A stretch of 64,000 nt of DNA from Pelomyxa schiedti (GCA_020536535.1 JAHLWZ010000450.1:2991-66990); one strand, 5' to 3'. Counted from the stretch's first letter, positions 1,881 through 62,500 are shown. A program made the numbers and translations. The notes: generated by a model from the sequence alone, not told the origin.

Positions 1881-2104
1881 TGCGTGTCTCAAGCTCTGAT
1901 TAATTGCAATCAAATGTCATCAATACGCACAATTCACTGAAGTGACATCTCTGCAGGCAAATGACGTCTCCCTGTCGATTGATCGTTGAAGTCATTTTTT
2001 TAAACAAACAAAAAACGAAACCTCCACACCAACACGGACACTCAAACGAAGGTGTGTTGTTTGGTTGTGTGTGAGGGAACGACTGTAACCGCAAGATCTA
2101 CGAG

Positions 2105-5100
2105 ATGTTTCGACGTTCAGGGAGTGGTGTTAAGCAGAGGTACCGTATCACGTTCGTGGTGGGAACGGGTCTGCCGGCGACAGCGGCATCAGCGGCGGTG
2201 ACGTGGAAGAGAGGCGCCAAGAAGGAGAACCAGGGGACCGGCACACCGCGGCCTGTTGTGAACGGGGCGTGCGAGTGGAATGAAGCAATAAGCATTGTCT
2301 GTACTCTGTTCAAGGACGGCCCAACTTATGTACTTACTGTGTGGGGGATGCGGGCGTTAGTTATATGTTATTTTTCATGAACTTTCTCAGCTAGATATAT
2401 TTTAGGATGCCAAGAACATCATCTTCTGCATAGAAGAAAGAGGGGGAAAGAAAAAACACACCCTGGGTAAGACCACTGTAGACTTGAGTGAATATGCTGA
2501 CCTTGGTGGATCCACAAAGACTGCTACCCTTACCTTGACCAAGAAAGGGAAGGACAAGAGTTCAAAAGACAAAACACCCAAGTCCACAATGGGTCTTGTG
2601 GTATGCAGCCTTCGCTGTACCTTTTTCCTCATTACTTGGTCTTGATAACTTATATATGTATCAGGTGAAGTTTTCTTCTGAGAATATGGGTGCATCATCT
2701 GGGTTAGTAAAAAATTATTTATGGGCACAAACACGAAATTGATGTTTACTGCAGAGAAGATGAAACAGAAATCCTGAAATCAGAAGCTGATGTTTGTGCA
2801 TCTTTTTGTGTTTTTATACTCCTTATTCCCTCCCAGGAGGAAGAAGATGATAACGAAAAGGTAAATTTTGAGACCCTGGCTTCCAGCACTACCACTACTA
2901 CAACCACAGCATCGATATCACCCCCTCCAAAACCTTCCCCGGATATGTCTGTAGTTCAAGGTAAGAAGAACCCAATACCCTTAGCACAACTAATCAGCAG
3001 ATGTTGAAATGATGATGCAACTGAGGCAACAGTTGATTGACCTTGCAAAGGAACGGGAAGAGCTGAAAGAGCAGCTTGAAGAAAAGAAGCACTCAGCAAA
3101 TAAATACAAAAAGAAGGCCACTGAATTACAAACAGCATTGAGGTAGAGTGTTTTCTGAAACATAAAAAATAAATAGTTCAATTCAACAACACCACCATGT
3201 AAGATTGTAGCAACACTTTTGATACCTTTACTTTAAAGTCAACTTTGACAGTGCGAGTATCCCAGCAAGTGAGCAAGAGGATCTCAAAAATCAATTGGCC
3301 ACCCTTACAGCAGAAAAAGAAAAGCTTCTATTGGACAACAAAATCATTGCCGGTAACAAATGGAGCTAAGTTAGAGTATGATTAAATTATGTTAGACACC
3401 GCACAAGAGTTGGAATCCCAACAGGCCAAGACTAAAAGACTGCTTGAAAAATCTGTACGAAACCACACCCTTAACATTGTTTGACCCCACACAGCAAAAA
3501 AAACAGTTGGACCTCACAGAGCAACTGTCTGCCATCCAAAAAGAATTGGAAGCACAACAAAACACAAACCAGGAACTTCAGAAACAGCAGGAAAAATCTA
3601 TTTCTGAAATAACACAATTGCAAGAGCGAAGCCAGGTGCTAGATGTTGAATTGAACAAGAGCAACCTGAGAGCTCAGGATTTTGAATCCAAGTGGAAACT
3701 GTCTGAAGATAACGTTTCACAGCTTCAGCAGAGGGTATCAGAGCTGACAACACAATCCGCAGCGGAAATAGAGCGCCTTAACCAGCAACATGGACTCGAC
3801 CTGAACAAATTGGACCAACAGCTAAAATGTCTGCAAGAAGAAGTTGAAAAGCAAACAACAACTATCGCGTCATTAGGCAATCAGGTGTCTGATGCAAGAC
3901 AACTTGCAGCCGATTTTGAGCAAAAATACAAGGGAAGTGAAATGACTGTCACGCAACTTCAATCAGAGAGGGCTATGCTAAAAAAGGAAAACTGTGGCAT
4001 TCAAGAAGAACTCCAGAAGGTCAGATGCACATCTGAGGCTACAATCACACAACTAAATTCGGAGATCGATTCACTGAGGACTAAAAACGACTCTCTTCTT
4101 CAAACTGCATCCAGTACAAAAGCGGAATTGGAAAATTGTGACAAATTACTAAAGGATTGCGAAAAGGACCTGGAATTACACAAAAATAAGCTCAAGGAGT
4201 GTGAGTGCCAACTGGGCCTTAAGCAGCAGAAATTGGATGAAACTGAAACTCTGCTGCAGCAATCCAAGATGGAGCTGGAGAATTACACAAAGGAAATGGA
4301 GTGCAAGCTTGAAGAGCAGGGCAGACATCAACGCGAAATGGAGGCTGACCATGAAAACGCCCTGAAACAAGTGAACAATGACCTGGAATCACACAAGCAA
4401 CAAGTGAGGGCACTTGAAGACAGCTTGAAGACATGCAAGCAATGCAATGACGCCCAAGAAGTTGAATTGAATCAAAAGCTTGAGCAAATTGGGTCTCTCA
4501 AGGCAGGACTAGCTGAAAGCCAGCAACATGGTGAGAAGTTGGAAAATGAGCTTGAACGTCTAAACACACTTAATTCATCACTTGAACTTAAGCAGCAGTC
4601 CCTTACAGCGCAGCTGGAGGATTTTTCAAGGAAAATCACCTTGCTGGAGGAGCAAATATCCAGTGGAGATAACAAAAACAGGGAACTTGAGTCGGAATTG
4701 AGGAACCTCCTGCAGCACAAGGGAAACCTGGAACTTGATCTCTCATCACACAAGGAGAAAAGCACAGCCCTCGTGGCCCAATTAACTGCAGAGAAAAGCC
4801 AACTGGCATCCCAGATTCAAACAGCCAATGAAGAATTCCTCAACCTGCGGGCAGATTTTGAGAAGGAACAGCGGCACAACAAAGATGTTGAAGAAAAGCT
4901 CCAAAAGAAACGGAACACCTGCAAGTCACTGAAGAAGGATTTGGAAGAGAGGAAAAATTCAATCAGTGCCCTGGAAGAAAAGCTTGCCCAGCACCAGCAG
5001 CAGAACACAGATTTACAGGAAAAGCTTGCAAATATGCAACAGGATAGTGCTTCAGTGAAATTGGAACTGGACAACAAAGCCAAGTATTGCCAAGACTTGG

Positions 5101-8100
5101 AAGCCCAGATATTGATGCACAAAGAGCAATACAAGAGCATTGAAGAAGAGTTAAAGCAAGCTAAATTAAGTTGCAGCCAGTGCTTTGCACGCATCCAAGA
5201 ACTGGAAGCCGGGGCACAGGAAAGCGAGAAACAGATGCAAGCACTCAGAAGTGACCTGAATAACAGTGCGCAAAAGTTCCAGGACCTGGATGTTCAATCC
5301 AAAGCGGAACGGCAGTCCCTGGAATCGCATATAAAGGACATTTCACAGGAAAGCGAAAAGCTGAAGTTGCAGCTTGATGCCAATCAGCACCACAGCCAAC
5401 AGCTGCAAGAACAGCTTGAAAAAGAGACCGCTTCCAAAGCGGCAGTGGAAGCCAATTTTGCTGAACTTAACAAACAAAAAAAAAGTTTGGAGGATGACCT
5501 CAAGGAGCACAAAGAACAGCTTGCCAGCCACTTGCACACAATCGCACAGCTTGAATCGCAACTCAATCTTCAAAGAGAAACTGTGGAGAAAGAGCTCAGG
5601 GATAAAATCGGCGTGCTTGAAGTTGAGCTTTCAGAGCAGAAGAATGCCTATTCTCTGCTGGAGAACAACCTCCAGAACAGCTCCCGGCAACTTCAGAATT
5701 TGACTGACGAACTTGAAATTAAAGTGCAGCAACACAATTCACTGAAAGAAGACATCAACAAAGAGAAGGAACGCAACACACAATTTACACTCATGGTAGA
5801 GGAGTTAAGAGGCCAACTTGCAGAACTAGGTGCCAAGTATGAGGACTGCAAGCAAAGCAACTCTGTGCTTAAATTAGAAGTGGACAAGAACAAAGAAGTC
5901 ATTGCGCAACATGAATCCAATTTGCAACAAAAGAGCGTGGTGATATCCAGTCTGGAAGGGGAAATTGCCCAGATCAATCAAAAGAAAACAGAAATGGAAC
6001 TAAGCTATGAGCGAGCACTGGAAGAACAGAAAATAGCACTGAACAGTGAAAAGCAAAGTGCACTCCAACAACAAGAGGCCGCACTAAACACAGAAAAACG
6101 GAACGCACTCGAGCAACAGGCAAGTGTATATAATGCCGAAAAGCAGAGTGCACTTGATCAACAGGAGGCTGCACTCAACACTGAGAGGCAGAACGCATTG
6201 GAACAGCAAAAGATTGCACTTGAAGCAGAAAAAGAAAACGCACTTAAAGATCAAGCAGCCACACTCAACACTGAGAAGCAAAGTGCACTTGAAGACCAGG
6301 CAACCACACTTGGTGCAGAAAAAGAGAACGCACTTGAAAAACAAGCTGCTGCACTCAACACAGAAAAGCAAAACGCACTTGAAAAACAAGCTACTGAACT
6401 AAACGCTGAAAAGCTTAAGGACCTAGACCAAAAGGAGGCTGCACTCAGGAAAGAGCAGCAGAAGGCACTTGAAGAGCAAGAGATCACACTCAGGAAGGAG
6501 AAGCAGGAGGCACTTGAAGAGCAAGAGGCAACACTCAGGAAGGAAAAGCAGAAGGCACTTGAAGATCAAGAGATTGCACTGAATGCAGACAAACAAAGTG
6601 CACTCGAAAAGCAAGAGATTGCACTGAATGCAGACAAGCAAGGTGCACTCGAAAAGCAAGCCATATCACTGGGTGCAGACAAACAAAGTGCACTTGAAAA
6701 GCAAGCAATTTCACTGGATGCAGAAAAGCAAAGTGCACTGCAGCAGCAAAGAAGCACACTCGAGGAGGAAATGCAAAGTGCCATGAAACAGCAAGCAATG
6801 GCACTGAGCACAGAGAAGCAGAACGCACTTGAGCAGCAGCAAGCTGCACTGAGCACAGAAAAGCGGAACGCGCTCGAGCAGCAGGAGGCCGCGCTCAAGG
6901 CGGAAAAGCAGCAGGCACTTGAGCAGCAGGAAGTCGCACTCAAGGCGGAAAAGCAGCAGGCACTCGAGCAGCAGGCAAGTGCACTGGATTCCGAGAAGCA
7001 AAAGGCTCTTGAACTGCTGGCAGCCACACTCAAGGCAGAAAAGCAGCAGGCACTTGAACAACAGGCAAGTGCACTGGATGCCGAGAAGCAATGCGCCCTG
7101 CAACAGCAAGCAAGTGCACTGGGCGCCGAAAAGCAAGCGGCACTCGAGCAGCAGGCAACCACACTAAACGCAGAAAGGAAGGATGCGCTCGAGCAGCTGC
7201 AATCTTCACTCGACGCAGAGAAGCAGAAGGCACTTGAGCAACAAGCAAGTTCACTGGAAGCCGAAAAGCAAAACGCCTTGCAACAACAGGCAAGTTCACT
7301 GGATGCCGAGAAGCAGAACGCCCTGCAACAACAAGCAGCGGCGCTCAACGCAGAAAGGAAGGATGCACTCGAACAGCAAGCGGCTTCACTCGAGGCAGAG
7401 AAGCAGAGTGCACTGGAACAGCAGGCCAACGCACTGGAGGCACAGAGGCAGAGCGCGCTGGAGGCAGAGAGGCAGTCGGGTGCCGCCAAGTTGGCAGAGC
7501 TCAAAGGGCTCATGGAAAGCTCACTGGAACAGCAAGCCAAAACACTCGAGGCAGATAAGCAGAGCGCACTTGCACAAGAGAGGCAGAACGGCTCTGACAG
7601 GCTTGCAGAGCTCAAGCAGGCCATGGAAAGCCAGCTCGAGGCAGAGAAGAAGTCCAGCTCCGACAAGCTGGCGGAGGCCAAAGAGGGCATGGAGAGGGCA
7701 CTCCAAATGCAGCAGCAGCAACACCAGCAGGAGCAGGAGCAGGCAATCGCGACAACGACTTCACAGCTCCGGCTGGAGGCGGAAAGGGAAAGGGAAACCC
7801 TGAGGAGGGTGCTTGAAGAAGAAGCTGCACGAGTTGAAAAGGAAAGGCGCCTTGAACGCGAGCAACGCGATTCGGCATACGAGCAAGAGCTGGCCAGGCT
7901 TCGTCAGCTTCTGCAAGAAAAGGAACAAGAGCTCAAGGATAAGCTCGAGGCGGAAAGGCAGAGTTGGTCAGCCAAGCTTGCTGACCTCAAGCGTGACATG
8001 GACAATGCACTCGAACGACAGGCAGCTGCACTCAACGCCGAAAAGCAAAGTGCACTCCAACAACAAGAAACCACACTCAACTCAGAGAAGCAGAGTGCAC

Positions 8101-11100
8101 TCGAGCAACAAGAAACCGCACTCAACGCGGAGAAGCAAATCGCGCTCGAGCAGCAAGCAGCATCACTGAACGCGGAAAAGCAAAGTGCACTCGAGAAGCA
8201 GGCGGCATCACTGAACTCGGAAAAGCAAAGTGCACTGGAGCAACAAGAGGCCTCACTCAACACAGCCAAGCAAAGTGCACTGGAGCAACAAGCAGCATCA
8301 CTGAACTCGGAAAAGCAAAGTGCACTGGAGCAACANNNNNNNNNNNNNNNNNNNNNNNNNNNNNNNNNNNNNNNNNNNNNNNNNNNNNNNNNNNNNNNNN
8401 NNNNNNNNNNNNNNNNNNNNNNNNNNNNNNNNNNNCGGAAAAGCAAAGTGCACTGGAGCAACAGGCAACATCGCTTGAGGCGGCAAAGCAGAACGCACTC
8501 AAGCAGCAAGAAACCGCACTCGGCGCGGAAAAGCAAAGTGCACTCGAGCAACAGGCAGCTTCCCTAGAGGCTGAAAAGCAGAACGCACTCAAGCAACAAG
8601 AGGCTGCACTGAGTGCCGAGAAGCGGAACGCTCTTGAAGAGCAGGCAAGTGCACTGAATTCCGAAAAGCAAAGTGCACTCGAGCAGCAAGAATCGGCACT
8701 CAACGCGGAAAAACGGAACGCACTCGAGCAACAGGCAAGTGCACTGGATGCCGAGAAGCAGAACGCACTCAAGCAACAGGAAACAGCACTCAACGCCGAA
8801 AAGCGGAACGCTCTGGAGCAACAAGAAGCTGCACTCGATGCCGAGAAGCAGAACGCCCTTGAACAACAAAAGGTGGCACTTGGCACTGAAAGGCAGAACG
8901 CACTGGAAGAGCAAAAAGCGGCACTGAGTGCTGAAAAGCAAACTGCACTGGAGCATCAAAAGGCAGAACTGAGTGCTGAAAGGCAAACTGCACTGGAAGC
9001 ACAGAAAGCGGCACTGGATTCGGAAAAGCAAAGCGCACTGGAAGATCAAAAGGCGGCACTGAACAGTGAAAAGCAAACCGCGCTGGAAGAACAGAAAACG
9101 GCACTGAATGGTGAAAAGCAAAGCGCACTGGAAGATCAAAAGGCAGAACTGAGTGCTGAAAGGCAAACTGCACTGGAGCATCAAAAGGCAGAACTGAGTG
9201 CTGAAAAGCAAACTGCACTGGAGCACCAAAAGGCAGAACTGAGTGCTGAAAGGCAAACTGCACTGGAAGCACAGAAAGCGGCACTGAACAGTGAAAAGCA
9301 AAGCGCACTGGAAGAACAGAAAACGGCACTGAACAGTGAAAAGCAAACCGCGCTGGAAGAACAGAAAACAGCACTGAACGCCGAAAAGCAAAGTGCACTC
9401 CAACAGCAAGAATCTGCACTCAACGAGGAAAAGCGGAACGCACTCGAGCAACAGGCAAGTGCACTTGATGCCGAAAAGCAAAACGCTCTGCAACAACAGG
9501 CAAGTGCACTTGATGCCGAAAAGCAGAAGGCTCTCAAGCAACAGGAGGATGCACTCAGCACAGAGAGGCAGAACGCCATGGAGCAGCAAAAGATTGCACT
9601 TGAAGCAGAAAGAGAAAACGCACTTGAAAAGCAATCAGCCACACTCAACGCCGAGAAGCAAAGCGCACTCGAAAACCAGGCAGCCGCACTTGGTGCGGAA
9701 AAAGAGAACGCACTTGGAAAGCAAGCTGCTGCACTCGAAACGGAAAAGCAAAGCGCACTTGAACAGCAATCTGTTGCACTCCACACAGAAAAGCAAAACG
9801 CACTTGAAAAGCAATCTTGTGAGCTCAATGCAGAAAAGCAGAACGCACTTGAACAGCAATCTGTTGCACTCAATGCAGAAAAGCAAAATGCACTCGAAAA
9901 GCAAGCTGCTGAGCTCAATGCAGAAAAGCAAAACGCACTTGAACAGCAATCTGTTGTGCTCCACACAGAAAAGCAAAACGCACTTGAAAAGCAATCTTGT
10001 GAGCTCAACACAGAAAAGCAAAACGCACTCGAAAAGCAAGCTGCCGAGCTCAACGCAGAAAGGCTGAAGGACCTAGACCAAAAAGAGGCTGCACTCAGGA
10101 AAGAACAGCAGAAGGCACTTGAAGAGCAAGAGATCACACTCAGGAAGGAGAAGCAGGAGGCACTTGAAGAGCAAGAGGCAACACTCAGGATGGAGAAGCA
10201 GAAGGCACTTGAAGATCAAGAGGTTGCACTGAATGCAGACAAACAAAGTGCACTCGAAAAGCAAGCCATTTCACTCGACGCGGAAAAGCAAAGTGAACTA
10301 CAGCAGCAAAAAAGCACACTTGAGGAGGAAATGAAACAACAAGCATTGACACTCAACACAGAGAAGCAGACTGCACTTGAGCAGCAGGCGGCCACACTGA
10401 ACACAGAAAAGCAGAAAGCACTTGAGCAGCAGGAATTTGCACTCAAGGCAGAAAAGCAACAAGCACTTGAACAGCAGGCCAGTGTGCTGGAGTCTGAGAA
10501 GCAAAAAGCACTCGAGCAGCAGGCAGCCACACTCAATGCAGAGAAGCAGCAGGCACTTGAACAACAAGCAAGTGCACTGGATGTCGAAAAGCAAAGTGCC
10601 CTGCAGCAACAAGAAGCAGAACTCGATGCAGAAAGGAACGGTGCACTTGAACAGCAGGAATTTTCTCTAAGGGATCAAATTCGAACAGTAGAACTAGTCG
10701 TTAAAGACAAAGACTCTGTTATTCAAGCCCTTGAAGGTTCAGTGGAACGACTGCAGAAAGAAACATTTTCTTTGGAAGACCAGAAGAAGCAGATGGCACT
10801 TGAAGTTGAAAGTTTAACTCAAGTTTCTGAGCAGCACTCACACTGTGAGTCCCTCCGTAGGCAACTTGAAGAACAACTACGGAATGAGCTCTCTGCTGTG
10901 GAAAATAAGTTCCAGGAGGTTTGAGAATGCAACAAATTTCTTTTTGTTAACCGTCTTTCAGCAACTTCGATCTTTATCCCATCAATTAGAAGTTGTTGTA
11001 ATTGTTAAGAAGGCATTATATCAGATCGAGTCCCCCGCTTTTGATTCCGAGTTTGTCCCTCGGCCATGTAATATGTTACTTGGGGCCATGAAGGAGTGGG

Positions 11101-54372: not shown

Positions 54373-56567
54373 CTATCCCTCATTGGCGTGAATGAGCCCT
54401 TTCCTGGCGGGCCCTGGCTTTGTACTCCTTGATGAGTGCCCCACACCCTGTACAATCCTCTTCGTACTGCCATGTGTTGTGCTCATCACCCAGGCCCTTC
54501 CACTGAACGAGGAACTGCCTGCCATGGCTCTTCCACCTTTCTCCAACGATGGCCTCCATCTCCTTCTGCCCTGGGCTCGCGTGTGTATAGTGTCATCCCC
54601 CTGCGGTGGGGACCTTTTGGGGTCGAGGTCGTGCTGGGTGTCTGGTGGATCCTCCGTTTCGGCATCGTCTCCTCGTTCGTGCTGCGTTTGGTCGTCGGCT
54701 TGTGACCTCCAGTCGTCTCTCTGTTCGGGGGTCTCATTGTGGCTTGTGTGCACCTCACCCCCCGCCCTTTCCGGCCCCTCCTCGGGTATTGCGTGGCACT
54801 TGCATAGATGCCCCAAGTTTACCAGTTTCGGGGACTTCTGGCCGTCCATAGTCTCGAGCCTGGCAGCCCAATTCACGGGGAGACTTGTGATGCGGTACGG
54901 GCCCTTCCACTTGTTGGCCAGTTTGCCTAGCTCCCTGTCCTTGTGTCCGCCTGTCCGTAGGACATACACTAGATCCCCTACCCTGAACTTCCTTTCTGTG
55001 GCTGTTGTGGCTTTGGTGCGCTCGTCATCCCATGCCTGCCATATGAGCTCTGCTGTCCGTTGCGCCAGCCGCCACGCTTCCCGTACCTTCTTGGTCACCC
55101 TTTCGGCTTGCCCGCCAACCAAGACCTCCTCACCCGTCCCAGCCATCGCCCCTGGAGTCCGGGCATCCCTCCCATGCTCGAGGTAGAAAGGTGAAAATCC
55201 TGTTGCTCTGCTAGTTGCCGTGCGGTACGCAAATGTCATCATTGGCAGGAGCTCATCCCAATTGTCCTTATCCTTGCCAGCGTGTATACGCAGCATTTCC
55301 ACCAGTATGTGGTTGTACCGCTCAGTTTTCCCATCGGCCTGAGGGTGATACGCCGTCGTCTTCCTCTGTTCGATGTGTAGTGCCGTGCATAGCCCTTCCA
55401 TGATCCGGGTCACAAAGTGGGAGCCCGATCACTAATGATCACACGTGGGACACCCCTTTGGCACACCCAATTCCTTAGCACTGCCCGTACTGCTGACTCG
55501 GCGTCCGGGTGTTTTGTGGCCTTCAATTCCACGTCTCCTGTCAAGTGGTCGATCATCACGAGGATATACGCATTCCCTCGTCTGGTGGATCTCAGTGGTC
55601 CGATGAAGTCCATACTCATGACCTCCCCAGGTTCACCTGGCACCGCCATTGGGAAGCCCACAGCTGCCCCTTTCCGGGCCGGCACCTTGGCCACCTTGCA
55701 CTCGTGACAGCTGTTGCAGTGGCGAGTAATGTCTGCCCCCATGTTTGGCCACCAGAAATGGCCTTTGATGCGGTCCAACGTATATGCTTCGGAAAGATGA
55801 CCCGCGAAGATGCTGGCGTGGTTATCCTGCATTACCTGTCCCCTCATGATCGTTGGAACAACCACCGAGCGGTAGATCAGTTTCCTCCGGTGGTTCGCCT
55901 CCTTGTGGTGCAGTATTCCTTCGCAGACCTCAAAGTCCGCCCTTTCCAGGTCTAAGTGGTGCAGGTCCTTTGGCAAGGGTGATCCCCCTAGCCATGCTGA
56001 TAGCGCTTGGCAGTCGGTGTCTGTTGCTTGCGCCTCCTTCCACCCAACCAAGTTGTCCCCCAACGCCGCAACAACAAACACTCGTGGCATCCTGCTGATT
56101 GTGTCCACATCCCCCGACTGCTTTCCCGGCCTAAATTCCACTACAGCCCCATAATCATCCAGCAGTATTTGCCAGTGGGCAACCCTGGCACACGGGTGTT
56201 CCTGGTTCTGCATCCAGGTTAGGGCTTTGTTGTCTGTCTTGACAACACATCCGACTCCGTGTATATAGCTGCGGAATTTCTTAAGTGCCCACACGACTGC
56301 CGCCGCCTCTAGCTCACACACGGTATCGTACTTCTTTTCGTGGGGCGTGGTGACCCTGCTTGCAAGCTCGATAATGCGTTCCGCTCCCTTCGCGTCCATT
56401 TGTACCAGCGCGGCCCCCATTCCCACCTTGCTAGCGTCCGTGTGAATTTCCAGCCTGAACTCTGAGCTGTAATCTGGGTACTCAAGCAGGAGTTTCTCGG
56501 CAATTAGGTGCTTAATGTGTGTGAACGCTTCCTCGCAGCGCTCATCCCACACCCATGGTGCCGCCAC
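54373..56567 (-). pseudogene. pol remnant: RNase H and integrase, frameshifted at ~55413
   Basis: RNase H IHTDASKVGMGAAL, ELEAAAVVWAL, KTDNKAL; HHCC zinc finger (HASIFAGH..CHEC); catalytic MDF, SDRAP, YHPQADGKTERYN; C-terminal KWKGPY motif. Confidence 0.92.
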
Positions 56568-57339: not shown

Positions 57340-57543
57340 CACCAAGCAGTGATTGTTTCTCGCCAACAAGTAGAAGCCGGGCTGCTTGAGTGAACTCCAA
57401 CATCACCCATTGCATATCTGGGTCAATGGGCAGAAGTTTTTTACCTATCAAAAAGTACATACTTCCACCCCAACAAAAACTTCCGCCCAGGTGGAGGTAT
57501 GCACTTTTTGGTCTGAGAAAAAGTTTTTAAGTTTTAAGCCAAC

Positions 57544-59400
57544 TCAATATTTATTTAACAGTGCTGACAAGGTTGTCAAAGCCACAATTTGTTGTAACAA
57601 ACACTCCCAAGTGTTGTGTGGGTCAGATGAAGAAAGTCTACCACGGCAACAAACTTCCTTCAGATGTTTATGCCATTTGTTCATAGCTTCAGCTAGTTCT
57701 TGTTTGAGAATACTTGGGGGACCAAAAAATTTAGCATCTGACCATGAATGCTCACACCAATAGTGAACAGAGGGTTGAGCTTTTGGCTAAACAAGGAGTA
57801 TAAAGCTAACATGTTATTCCTAGTTGTGGTCCACCTTGAATGAATATCATCAGTCAACTTCTCACAATGTAACCACTCATAAGCAAAATTCAAGACAGAC
57901 ACTAAGTCATTCAAAATATTTCTCAAAGATCTGTTTTGAACATCATTTGGCCTCCAGAGAACATAAACTTTTTGGCTCAACTCAGTTTGAACCCTGGTAG
58001 AAGCAGAATCCCAAAGATGGTCCAAACAATGAGATTCCATCACTGCTTTGGCTGTGTTTGCTTGAAAAGTTTTTTTTGGCCAATGAGAGGCACATGTGTT
58101 GATAGCAACCTTTAGAGTTGTGGCCAAAGCTTTATAGCCCTGAGACTTCAACCAGTCATAACAAGATAATAAAAGATTCAACATCACATTGGCAAAACAG
58201 TGCAAAGGGTCATACACCAACCTTTGCAATATTGGTTTAAGCAGAGAAAAAAGGCAATGTTGACATGTCTGCATGAGCACAGTGATTGGGCCCATATTAC
58301 ACCACTACAACCACCATTGAATGGAGCATTTCTCTCTTGTCCAGCAATGTTTTCTTTTCTAGTGAAACATGCTTCTTCTCACAGACTGTGGCATCTGCAT
58401 GGTTTAGGCCACATCCTTGTGAAAGGTTTCATTGATGGTTGGCAACTGTGGGGAAAAAATCTCTTTGAGGATTGATGTCTTCATGAATTTCTTCAATGTC
58501 TGTTGCTGCAACAGATGTAGTCTTCCCAACATCTCTTTGTGTAAGAAGAGCTTTATGTGGCAGCTTCTTTGCTGCACTTGCCTTGATGAGTGTGATGCAA
58601 AAATTACCCCAGCTGTCTGGAATCAAGTGGTTGTTGCTATCTCTCTTTTGATTTTGAAAGATTCTGACAACATATTGTGGAGACACAACACCCCACACAT
58701 TCACTAATTGCCCCACAGTGAGAAAAACAAGGTCTGGGGGGTTCTGTCTCTCCACTTTCACCTCTTCCCACCACTTCACTCCACTTTTCGCCACACTGTG
58801 AACTGGTTTCTCCCCACTCCAACAGTACCCTTTTTTGGGGGTGTATAAGCACACCTCATCTTTTTCTTTCTTGTTCTTCTTTTCCTCAATCTTCATCCCC
58901 TCTTTTCTTTCCATTTTTTTGGCTTCAATTACTTCCTTCAATGCCACCACAAACTTTTCTCCTTTCTTCCATTTGACTTCCCCATTTTTGTTGAGACACA
59001 AAGATAAGAGGCGATCAAATTCTGAGGCAGCACACTTGGCTTCTCTCATTTTCGGTATCCAATTCATATCAGGTTTTGTATTGAAGTCAATACAGTGTTT
59101 AATGCTTTGGTACCATACTAAAATCAAAATTAGTTGTTTTGGTAGTATCCGTTTCTTTTACCAGAAGATGTTGCTTGAGTTTCAGATGATGTGGTAGTGG
59201 ATGAACTTTGTTCATTTGTGTTGCTTGAACAAGGATGCTCTTGGCATACAGACTCACTTGTATTATTAAAACAAGGAATCTCATCATTACAAATCTCCTG
59301 AGGCACATCAACCTCCACCACCTGGCTCAAATTTAAAACAAAATTGGAAGAGTTTCATCATTGGAATCAGATCCAGCATTTTGAAGTGATGATACTGACT
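57544..59400 (-). pseudogene. Decayed DDE transposase of the Transib/RAG1-CMC clade
   Basis: LVYDPLHCFANV (D-x-L-H). After a frameshift near 57775, PSVHYWCEH...GPPSILKQELAEAMNKWHK (H-x4-H, then E-x-x-E-x-x-N-K). Several stops and frameshifts; 5' part ends at the gap. Confidence 0.65.
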
Positions 59401-59465
59401 GGGTATGCCTGGATCGGTCACGAAGAGAATGGGAATGCTTGAGTCGCTTAGGTTTTGGAGGAGTT

Positions 59466-59565
59466 NNNNNNNNNNNNNNNNNNNNNNNNNNNNNNNNNNN
59501 NNNNNNNNNNNNNNNNNNNNNNNNNNNNNNNNNNNNNNNNNNNNNNNNNNNNNNNNNNNNNNNNN
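59466..59565. other. Scaffold gap (100 N)
   Basis: Run of N. Confidence 1.
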
Positions 59566-62500
59566 TCTGAGAAGCAAAAAGCACTCGAGCAGCAGGCAGC
59601 CACACTCAATGCAGAGAAGCAGCAGGCACTTGAACAACAAGCAAGTGCACTGGATGTCGAAAAGCAAAGTGCCCTGCAGCAACAAGCAAGTGCACTGGGT
59701 GCTGAAAAACAAGAAGCACTTGAGCAGCAGGCAGCCGCACTCAACACAGAGAAGCAGAATGCACTTGAACAGCAGGCGGCCACACTGAACACAGAAAAGC
59801 AGAATGCACTTGTACAGCAAAAAAATGCACTGGATGCTGAGAAGCAAACTGCCCTGCAACAGCAAGCAAGTGCACTGGGTGCTGAAAAACAAGAAGCACT
59901 GGAGCAGCAGGCAGCCACATTCAACACAGAGAAGCGGAATGCACTTGAGCAACAAGCAAGTGCACTGGATGTTGAAAAGCAAAGTGCCCTGCAGCAACAA
60001 GCAGCAGTACTCGATGCAGAAAGGAAGGGTGCACTTGAGCAGCAGGCGGCTTCACTGAATGCAGAAAAGCAGAGTGCACTGGAGGCAGAGAGGCAGAGAG
60101 CCTCAGCTAGGTTGTGTGAACTGAAGGAGGACATGGAGAGGGCACTGGAGGCAGAGAAGCAGTCCAGCGCGGCACAACTGGCAGAGCTCAAAGCGTTCAT
60201 GGAACAGCAAGCTAAAACACTCGAGGCAGACAAGCAGAGTGCACTTGCACAAGAGAAGCAGAACAGCTCGGACAGACTTGCAGAGTTAAAACAGGCCATG
60301 GAAAACCAGCTTGAAGCAGAAAAGAAGGCTAGCTCCAACAGGATGGCAGAGGCCAAAGAGGACATGGAGAGGGCACTCCACCTACAGCAGCAGCAACACC
60401 AACAGGAGCAGGAGCAGGCAATTGCAGCAACAACTGCACAGCTCCGGCTGGAGGCAGAAAGGGAAAGAGAAACACTGAGGAGGGCGCTGGAAGAAGAAGC
60501 TGCACAAGTGGAAAAGCAAAGGCACCTTGAATGTGAGCGATGTGAATCAGCCTATCAGCAAGAACTGGCCAGGCTTCATCAGCTTCTGCAAGAAAAGGAA
60601 CAAGAGCTCAAAGATAAGCTCGAGGCAGAAAGACAGAGTTGGTCAACAAAGCTTGCTGACCTCAAGCGCGACATGGACAATTCACTTGAACAACAGGCTC
60701 TTGCTCTTAACGCCGAAAAGAAAAGTGCACTCCAACAGCAAGAAGCTGTGCTCAATGCAGAGATGCAGAGTGCACTTGAGAAGCAAGCAGCATCACTCAA
60801 CACAGAGAAGCAAAGTGCACTCGAGCAACAGGCAACTTTGCTTGATGCAGCAAAGCAGAATGCCCTCAACCAGCAAGAAACTGTGCTCAGTGCCGAAAAA
60901 CAAAGTGCCCTTGAGCAACAAGCAGCTTCCCTTGAGGCCGAAAAGCAGACCATACTCAGGCAGCAAGAGGCTGCTATGTCAAAGCAATCAGAGCTCATTA
61001 AACATTGTGAAGACAAGCTTGCACACCGCAAACAAAAAATCAGAGACTTCAAGTCTGAGGTGGAGAAGTATAGTCACCAGAACAAGCAGCTGGAAGCTGA
61101 ACTCCTGCAATGTCAGCAGCACTGCAAAGCTCTTGAAGAAGAGGCTCAAAAGAGTTACCAGCACAACAAATGTCTGGAAGAAGATCTGAGCATATGCAAA
61201 AAGAAAAATGAGGCACTACATGATGAAATTGAGCAATGCACACAATTAGCCAAAGTTGCTGACGAGAAATTGGGAAGCTTAACACAACACAACGCAACCC
61301 TTTCAACTGAAATAGACCAGCAAAAACGATGTGCTGAGGGACTTGCCAACAAACTTGGCCAGGTAAATCTCTTTTTATATTTCTATTATTTATATATATG
61401 TATATATAAATGTGGTCACGCCACTTAACCACACAAACTACGTCAGATCAGCAACCAGCTTGATGCGCAAATACAGGAAAATGCAAAGCTCACCTCAGAA
61501 ATTGAGGAACAAGCCAAAGCTGTTTTGGGTCTTGAGAGGCAACTCACAGATGGGAGAGATCTAAATCAAATGCTTACAACTCAAGTTCAGAATTTGAATT
61601 TACATGTGCACCAGCAGGAAGAACAGCTGATTCTGGTGCGGGAGCAACTCTTAAAATCACAGACGGAACTGGAGCAATGCAAGAGTGAACTGCACGATTC
61701 ATCTGGACAAAATTCCTCTCTCTCTCTGCAACTACAAAAGCGTGATGAACTGATAGAGGAACTTCATGCACAATGCAACAAACTAGAGGAGCAAGTCAAG
61801 AACCTGGAAGGGACAAAGATAGACCTCGAACACAAGATTGATGAAAGCCAAGTGTCCAGTTCCAACTTGGAAACGGAAACCAGAAGACTTCAAGATTACA
61901 TTCAAGAGCAAGCTAGTACTATATGTACATTTGGAGAATCCATTAAGAAATTTGAAGCCAGTTCAGATAGTTTTAAACAGCGTACAGAGATGCTGGATTC
62001 ACAACTTTCACATAGTCAAAAAGACATCACAATTTTGCAAGAAAGAGTTGAGGCCCTGAGCAAGGAAAAAGCCAAGCTGGAAGAGGATCTCAGCAAACAA
62101 AGCCAGACTGTCAAGAACCTTGAAGATGACATTCTTCAACACAAATCCCATGAGGAAGCCCAAGACAGAGAAATTGGTACTCACAAAACCAAAATCGGTG
62201 ATATGGAAGCTGAAGTAGAGCGACAAGCAGGGGTCATCAACCACCTGACTTCAGAGAACGAATCACGCAATCAAAGAATCGCGGACCTTTCCAGTGAAAT
62301 CGAAAAGCACAACCAACTTTCCAAATCACAACAGGAAGAGCTCAGTAAACGGCAAGGAAGGATAACCTCTTTGGAAAACGACCTGCAACAAATGACATTA
62401 CTTGAGACAGAGCTTAAGCAACGCAATCTCGCCTCACAGGAGGAACTTTGTGCAATGCAACAGGAAAACACAAAACTGAAAGAAAGCATTGAGCAATTGC

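Follow-up and report, generated by a model that had tools for sequence, protein, structure and literature searches.

The window analyzed here, a stretch of 64,000 nucleotides from contig C450 of the archamoeba Pelomyxa schiedti (C450:2991-66990), contains between position 57413 and at least position 59465 what we take, at a probability of roughly 85%, to be one copy, dead and rearranged, of a family of cut-and-paste DNA transposons in this species. The family is present in many copies and has terminal inverted repeats (TIRs), defined ends, and deletion derivatives, and we read it as a new lineage, recognized by no Pfam model and not assignable to Transib proper, of the CACTA/EnSpm-Mirage-Chapaev-Transib (CMCT) clade. 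Transib-type transposons, known chiefly from animals, gave rise to RAG1, the enzyme responsible for assembling antibody and T-cell receptor genes. The central claim of the original prediction, a fossil transposase with RAG1- and Transib-like features in an amoebozoan, holds, and no report on Transib or on the Pelomyxa family in Amoebozoa or Pelomyxa was found in the literature (Repbase aside).

Six-frame translation of window positions 57400 to 59400 placed YDPLHCFANV on the minus strand at 58214-58185, within an open segment extending from 58304 to 57696, and HYWCEH (57765-57748) together with QELAEAMNKWHK (57702-57667) in another frame, both within the open segment 57786-57547. The predicted occurrence of these minus-strand motif blocks in different frames was thereby confirmed, and the one-base frameshift proposed between them corresponds to a 1-bp deletion, the sole one in the window copy relative to the open 467-aa open reading frame (ORF) of the C276 copy. 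The same deletion is present in the C1317 copy, which is 97.8% identical over this part in a global alignment. Judged from the C276, C791, and C1317 copies, the minus strand from 58247 to 57547 codes for family residues about 254 to 486, while residues 120 to 253, including the second catalytic Asp and the Cys pair, are missing. The motif of the first catalytic Asp, FIDGW, lies at 58428-58442 on the plus strand, opposite to the remainder of the gene; in both C276 and C1317, the corresponding piece (residues 42 to 119) and the remaining gene are oriented alike. The earlier candidate for a catalytic Asp, LLDKREM near 58340, is an antisense reading of this plus-strand piece and is ruled out. Further upstream, the DNA at 58591-59331 and that preceding the core ORF of C276 are homologous (73% over 749 bp, E 3e-117), and on the protein level the upstream region weakly resembles the N-terminal parts of Pelo_16774 and the C791 copy. 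A Pfam scan of the coding pieces in the window gave no match. The parts of the copy are compiled in Table 1.

Table 1. Features of the transposon copy in the window and location of the distantly related P0009 element (approximate positions are marked with a tilde).
Feature	Position	Strand	Basis or remark
3' TIR, outer end at 57413	57413..57445	+	sole terminal-motif match in the window
3' subterminal non-coding region with short inverted motifs of the CTTCCGCCCAGGTGGAGG type	57446..57546	-	sequence
C-terminal coding piece, family residues about 407-486, HYWCEH and QELAEAMNKWHK with catalytic Glu	57547..57786	-	translation, comparison of copies
1-bp deletion, frame shift between the two C-terminal coding pieces	~57774	-	global alignment to C276
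Coding piece, residues about 254-410, alpha-helical insertion domain, YDPLHCFANV	57696..58247	-	comparison of copies
Transposase core piece in inverted orientation (family residues 42-119), FIDGW	58239..58472	+	comparison of copies
Upstream N-terminal region, open segment 59157-58432 and beyond, up to the assembly gap	58473..59465	-	DNA homology
Scaffold gap, run of 100 N	59466..59565	.	5' end of the window copy, if present, unassembled
P0009 element copies	2018-5762 (first) and 2846-6583 (second), contig excerpts		two metagenome contigs

Without the second Asp and the Cys pair, frameshifted, with the first-Asp piece in inverted orientation, and showing one TIR only, the window copy cannot work; it is an inert fossil without function. 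The inversion could be an artifact of assembly or amplification, since the contigs of the fragmented Pelomyxa assembly include palindromes such as C3792. This 713-bp contig consists of exact reverse-complement flanks around an 87-bp foldback of a transposon terminus (C3792:380-680) and is probably itself a product of amplification or assembly, which calls for caution with structural calls in this assembly. Several contigs start about 90 to 120 bp inside a transposon terminus (e.g., C1007:91-120, C1314:92-121, and C1716:91-120), where a subterminal hairpin seems to break the assembly. With respect to the neighborhood of the copy, a 385-aa ORF resembling the pol of LTR retrotransposons, with RNase H and integrase region and an H..H..C..C zinc motif, adjoins the 3' end of the transposon (window 55410-56567, minus strand). 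On the other side, a long coiled-coil ORF with repeats of the EKQSALEQQA type (59455-61428, plus strand) starts directly past the N gap, and due to this intervening gap its true adjacency to the transposon is uncertain.

The Pelomyxa schiedti assembly (52 Mb, 5337 contigs) yielded 31 matches to a 203-aa segment of the window, with non-identical copies down to E 1e-83, and 67 matches to a fuller query, many of the copies being truncated or internally deleted. The search for intact copies that had been suggested was successful, i.e., open core ORFs of 488 aa (C791) and 467 aa (C276) were found. The more complete copies have a length of about 4.1 kb, and their inverted repeats begin with 5'-CATAWCTGGRTCA, followed by subterminal regions filled with short inverted motifs, which at the position equivalent to that in the window measure 15 to 25 nt in other subfamilies. 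Eight copies stop being homologous at one identical base, which in the window is exactly position 57413, and their flanks are unrelated. Read inward from this base, the 3' TIR of the window copy is CATATCTGGGTCAATGGGC..., and its terminus belongs to a third variant, CATATCTGGGTCA, that it shares with C1317. The terminus of one subfamily, CATATCTGGATCA(G/A)TGGGCGGTGA..., was detected 69 times in the genome and that of a second subfamily, CATAACTGGATCATGGGCGAAGG, 20 times, in both cases versus 0 for the control pattern. Seven Pelomyxa units with two TIRs were found, with lengths of 88, 1318 (two loci), 1672, 1790, 1994, and 4095 bp; the longest is the full-length element C791:90181-94275, which contains the 488-aa core ORF.

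Pelomyxa TIRs start with CATATC or CATAAC, and the elements have CAT...ATG ends in three subfamilies. A relative with 25% identity, P0009, is located inside a 3745-bp element of a eukaryote from metagenome assemblies. The TIRs of this element, CACATCTGG, begin with CACATCTGGCTCC, hence with CACATC, and its ends are CAC...GTG. It occurs at two loci with 99.8% identity and different flanks, on two contigs that come from different metagenome assemblies. Across the family, from the Pelomyxa elements to the P0009 element, the terminal motif CAYAWCTGG is kept, and both fit the 5'-CA..TG-3' termini that are a trait of the CMCT clade (PMC12730594). The P0009 element also carries several ORFs on the opposite strand without a Pfam match; the divergent second ORFs of distant elements likewise lacked a Pfam match and had no detectable relationship to each other. 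The genes beside the P0009 element include F-box, histone, and membrane-transporter genes.

A chance resemblance of the motifs, or an ordinary host gene family that is not mobile at all, would be in line with the lack of a Pfam domain and with the NCBI annotation of the Pelomyxa members, which are named "hypothetical protein Pelo_..." only, the sequences being so diverged that they are invisible to Pfam models. This explanation is very improbable, as it is already contradicted by the TIR and copy number data, i.e., by sharp common inverted-repeat ends between unrelated flanks and by the many truncated and internally deleted copies, and it is at odds with a high-confidence structural model with a full-length RAG1-like fold (see below). 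With 31 genome matches and 68 profile relatives, the motif match is far beyond chance.

On the protein level, a word-based search retrieved five relatives only, and its repetition with a 72-sequence profile added none, whereas an exhaustive HMMER profile search recovered 68 proteins at E<=1e-3 among 1.84 billion (1.84e9) representatives, most of them metagenomic or Logan proteins. Pfam scans of the intact ORFs, of ten distant relatives, and of all 72 aligned members revealed no transposase family. Among fifteen near-full-length members with identities down to 17 to 25%, the residues D107, D192, W193, C221, C226, H269, R396, H415, and E440 are invariant. In the 72-sequence alignment, the putative catalytic triad is conserved in 35/36 (D107), 42/47 (D192), and 50/53 (E440) of the sequences, the Cys pair in 49/49 (C221) and 40/40 (C226), and the remaining positions in 39/42 (H269), 51/58 (H415), 49/53 (H420), and 49/52 (E437). 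The D-x-x-H, H-x4-H, and E-x-x-E motifs recognized beforehand in the window are thus conserved features of the family. Most members have a Cys pair spaced as C-x2-C, the Pelomyxa clade one spaced as C-x4-C, and the distance from H415 to E440 is 25 residues, as it is from H937 to E962 in RAG1. The combination of D-D-E, two Cys, and three His residues represents the signature that Kojima (2025) gave for the CMCT clade (PMC12730594). The order and spacing of the motifs had been regarded as fitting Transib/RAG1 best, in preference to CACTA, Mirage, and Chapaev, and this part of the prediction was not sustained, because the CMCT clade as a whole, RAG1 included, is defined by the D-D-E triad, the "two Cys and three His," C(2)C, and H(3-4)H (PMC12730594).

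The predicted structure of the core leads to a similar picture. The AlphaFold2 model based on the 72-sequence alignment (pLDDT 93.9, pTM 0.90) was used for all comparisons, the pLDDT having been 48.6 with 8 sequences. It displays the order beta1-beta2-beta3-alpha-beta4 with the Glu in a later helix; D107 is placed at the end of strand 1 and D192 after strand 4, residues about 248 to 430 form a helical insertion, and E440 is located in the next helix. The proposed Foldseek comparison with RAG1 and HzTransib turned out as anticipated, in that RAG1, BbRAGL, and HzTransib ranked above all other solved structures and the model contains a predicted RNase-H-like DDE core. All 49 matches at E<=1e-3 belonged to these three proteins, followed by the P element at E 6e-3; the resemblance to the three proteins spans model residues 6 to 488. 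VIA-align, with 395 to 419 aligned residues for these three, gave a Z score of 20.0 for RAG1 (419 residues aligned, rmsd 4.6, model residues 6-487 versus residues 459-1005 of mouse RAG1), 19.3 for HzTransib, 18.6 for BbRAGL, 13.1 for the P element, 9.3 for ISCth4, and 8.6 for Hermes, and an exhaustive scan of 48,161 chains left the order of the structure matches unchanged. The Drosophila P element transposase shares the RNase-H-like DDE core and a large insertion domain with the family and is the next best solved structure, with 339 aligned residues and a clearly weaker match. We know of no CACTA, Mirage, or Chapaev structure in the PDB, so the ranking among solved structures cannot separate Transib from those groups.

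Predicted structures provide such a comparison. In the ESM Atlas, the TM scores by query were 0.74 to 0.75 for unnamed cnidarian clusters, 0.73 for Plavaka, 0.70 to 0.71 for Transposase_21 (CACTA), and 0.68 to 0.69 for RAG1. The similar values across Plavaka, CACTA, and RAG1 indicate that the fold is common to the entire clade, and the preference for Transib/RAG1 as the best fit was not borne out in this respect either. Language-model features lean toward RAG1 clusters (0.95, with 176 to 181 of 256 features shared), ahead of Transposase_21 (0.89, 123 to 129 shared) and Plavaka (0.87), which is a lead and not a test. On the level of sequence, significant similarity to any named transposase was not found: phmmer and a 15-sequence profile retrieved nothing relevant among the PDB sequences, and the 72-sequence profile placed RAG1 in nine of the ten top positions with non-significant E values of 0.13 to 0.22. 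The best of these weak matches (E 0.13) aligns HY..NH with H937/H942 and E..E with E959/E962 of RAG1. The Pfam models for RAG1 (PF12940) in the family proteins and the Pelomyxa genome, and for Transposase_21 (PF02992) and Plavaka (PF18759) in the 72 members and the genome, gave no match, and as the controls in the genome were also silent, the genome results are weak negatives. A similar situation has been described for ESTA, whose tie to a named family is visible only via RAG1-based structure comparison (PMC12730594).

Target site duplications (TSDs) were sought as k-mers shared between the 15 bp on each side of six pairs, with alternative boundary offsets also tried, and no direct repeats of 2 to 10 bp were seen flanking the seven complete Pelomyxa copies and the two P0009 copies (long-read). 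A duplication hidden inside the TIR is ruled out by the orientation of the two ends, which form reverse complements and not direct repeats, and searches for empty-site patterns of two insertions found none. The sole regularity of the flanks is that most Pelomyxa copies have a G in front and a C behind, a G being found also at 57412 just outside the TIR of the window copy, and that the P0009 element has a T and an A at these places. This absence at nine complete copies contrasts with the 2 to 5 bp of every described CMCT lineage. Chimeric joins in the short-read assembly could have blurred the TSDs of the longer Pelomyxa copies and are unlikely to be the cause of the missing TSD at the 88-bp element. 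As to the expectation of CAC-starting TIRs with 5-bp TSDs, TIRs are present, but they start with CAT in Pelomyxa and with CAC only in the P0009 element, and a 5-bp TSD, as in Transib, was seen at none of the nine complete copies. The 2- to 4-bp TSD that together with CACTA-type termini would mark the CACTA/Mirage/Chapaev side was not seen at these copies either, their termini being CAYAWCTGG, and the proposed distinction of the two sides by TSD length finds neither length to work with. The apparent lack of TSDs, if real, would represent a mechanistic novelty.

What can be said about the mechanism is derived from the more complete copies, which would contain one spliced gene whose C-terminal core of roughly 490 aa is a putative DDE transposase. 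The core would have the RAG1/Transib architecture, in which a long alpha-helical insertion interrupts the RNase-H-like catalytic domain, and the Cys pair and the His residues of the core are predicted to be positioned like the zinc site of RAG1. The enzyme may bind the CAY termini as a dimer, and the DNA would be cut and rejoined by the D-D-E site, as in RAG1, Transib, and CACTA-type enzymes. For the Pelomyxa family, catalysis, zinc binding, and mobility are presumed by analogy with these systems.

The position of the family relative to known systems has to be weighed against this background. Its predicted full-length fold resembles that of the RAG1 core, BbRAGL (ProtoRAG), and HzTransib (Z 18.6 to 20.0), including the D-D-E order, the alpha-helical insertion that separates the Glu from the second Asp, the Cys pair after the second Asp, and the H-x4-H located 25 residues before the catalytic Glu. 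The family differs from RAG1 and Transib in an identity of only about 12 to 14% without a significant HMM match, in the lack of a visible 5-bp TSD, in the CAT start of the Pelomyxa TIRs, and in an N-terminal region of roughly 400 aa in which no Pfam or otherwise recognized domain was found; a RAG2-like partner gene was not identified for the Pelomyxa family. C(2)C, H(3-4)H, and 5'-CA..TG-3' termini are held in common with the CMCT lineages CACTA, Plavaka, ESTA, and Lanisha (Kojima 2025; PMC12730594). The predicted structures of CACTA/EnSpm (Transposase_21) and Plavaka match the family equally or slightly better than RAG1 (TM 0.70 to 0.73), whereas HMM matches, CACTA termini, and a 2- to 4-bp or TA TSD were not seen, and the host is an archamoeba and not a plant, fungus, or animal as for CACTA, Plavaka, ESTA, and Lanisha.

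A true membership in the Transib superfamily as a direct sister of RAG1, i.e., an amoebozoan Transib diverged beyond sequence recognition, would account for the full-length matches to RAG1, BbRAGL, and HzTransib as the best solved structures, the RAG1 clusters as nearest language-model neighbors, the identical spacing of 25 residues, and the CACA start of the P0009 TIR. In favor of this view, some recently described Transib relatives likewise lack canonical termini and a 5-bp TSD (bioRxiv 10.64898/2026.08.26.747230). However, the PDB ranking is uninformative for the reason given above, the Atlas scores of Plavaka and Transposase_21 exceed that of RAG1, the Pfam RAG1 model is without a match in the genome (a weak negative), and a 5-bp TSD was not seen. 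Moreover, Transib termini are reported to be invariably CAC and the TIR is composed of heptamer, spacer, and A-rich nonamer (PMC1131882), whereas position 3 of the Pelomyxa TIR is a T in place of the perfectly conserved C, and neither the heptamer-spacer-nonamer layout nor any second, nonamer-like block conserved across the Pelomyxa subfamilies was seen. We therefore regard the assignment to Transib as unlikely.

Even less probable in our view is a divergent member of the CACTA/EnSpm-Mirage-Chapaev side, Plavaka-like elements included. Subterminal repeats are typical of CACTA elements, and the short inverted subterminal motifs of the Pelomyxa elements, their 5'-CA..TG-3' termini, and the slightly higher Atlas scores of Plavaka (0.73) and Transposase_21 (0.70 to 0.71) are compatible with such a placement. 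It is opposed by the Transposase_21 and Plavaka HMMs, which match neither the 72 members nor the genome (the latter a weak negative), by a language-model similarity below that to RAG1, and by the lack of both CACTA termini and a 2- to 4-bp TSD.

An independent lineage within the CMCT clade is the placement that we favor, at close to even odds. A more far-reaching version of it is tentative and rather doubtful, namely, an independent deep lineage of RAG1-fold transposons in Archamoebae and environmental eukaryotes, characterized by CAYAWCTGG and integrating without TSD at G|C-type steps. If true, such TSD-free integration would amount to a target-joining geometry undescribed for any DDE cut-and-paste superfamily, and a RAG1-like architecture would exist outside animals and fungi that is distinct from both Transib and CACTA. 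Independent of this version, the model suggests that the whole-protein architecture of RAG1 with its D-D-E/Cys/His signature is present in an anaerobic amoeba and in environmental eukaryotes, and the family constitutes a new outgroup for rooting the RAG1/Transib/CACTA clade.

With respect to expression, the C791 element showed two joints in contigs from single-cell RNA libraries, which skip 46 and 48 bp and are absent from the DNA runs. Both have GT..AG ends on the coding strand, which argues for spliced transcripts, with the caveat that RNA libraries can contain DNA. At positions 8142/8143 of the excerpt with the full-length C791 element, contigs of the DNA runs carry 66 to 67 letters more than the assembly, reflecting either a variant copy or a small omission in the assembly. 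In a further contig from the RNA libraries, from which P0001 stems, 129 bp are skipped in frame (C791 excerpt 7098-7228), whereby the region of the Cys pair is removed; the ends of this skip are not GT..AG, and the contig is probably the transcript of a deletion-derivative copy and not the result of splicing.
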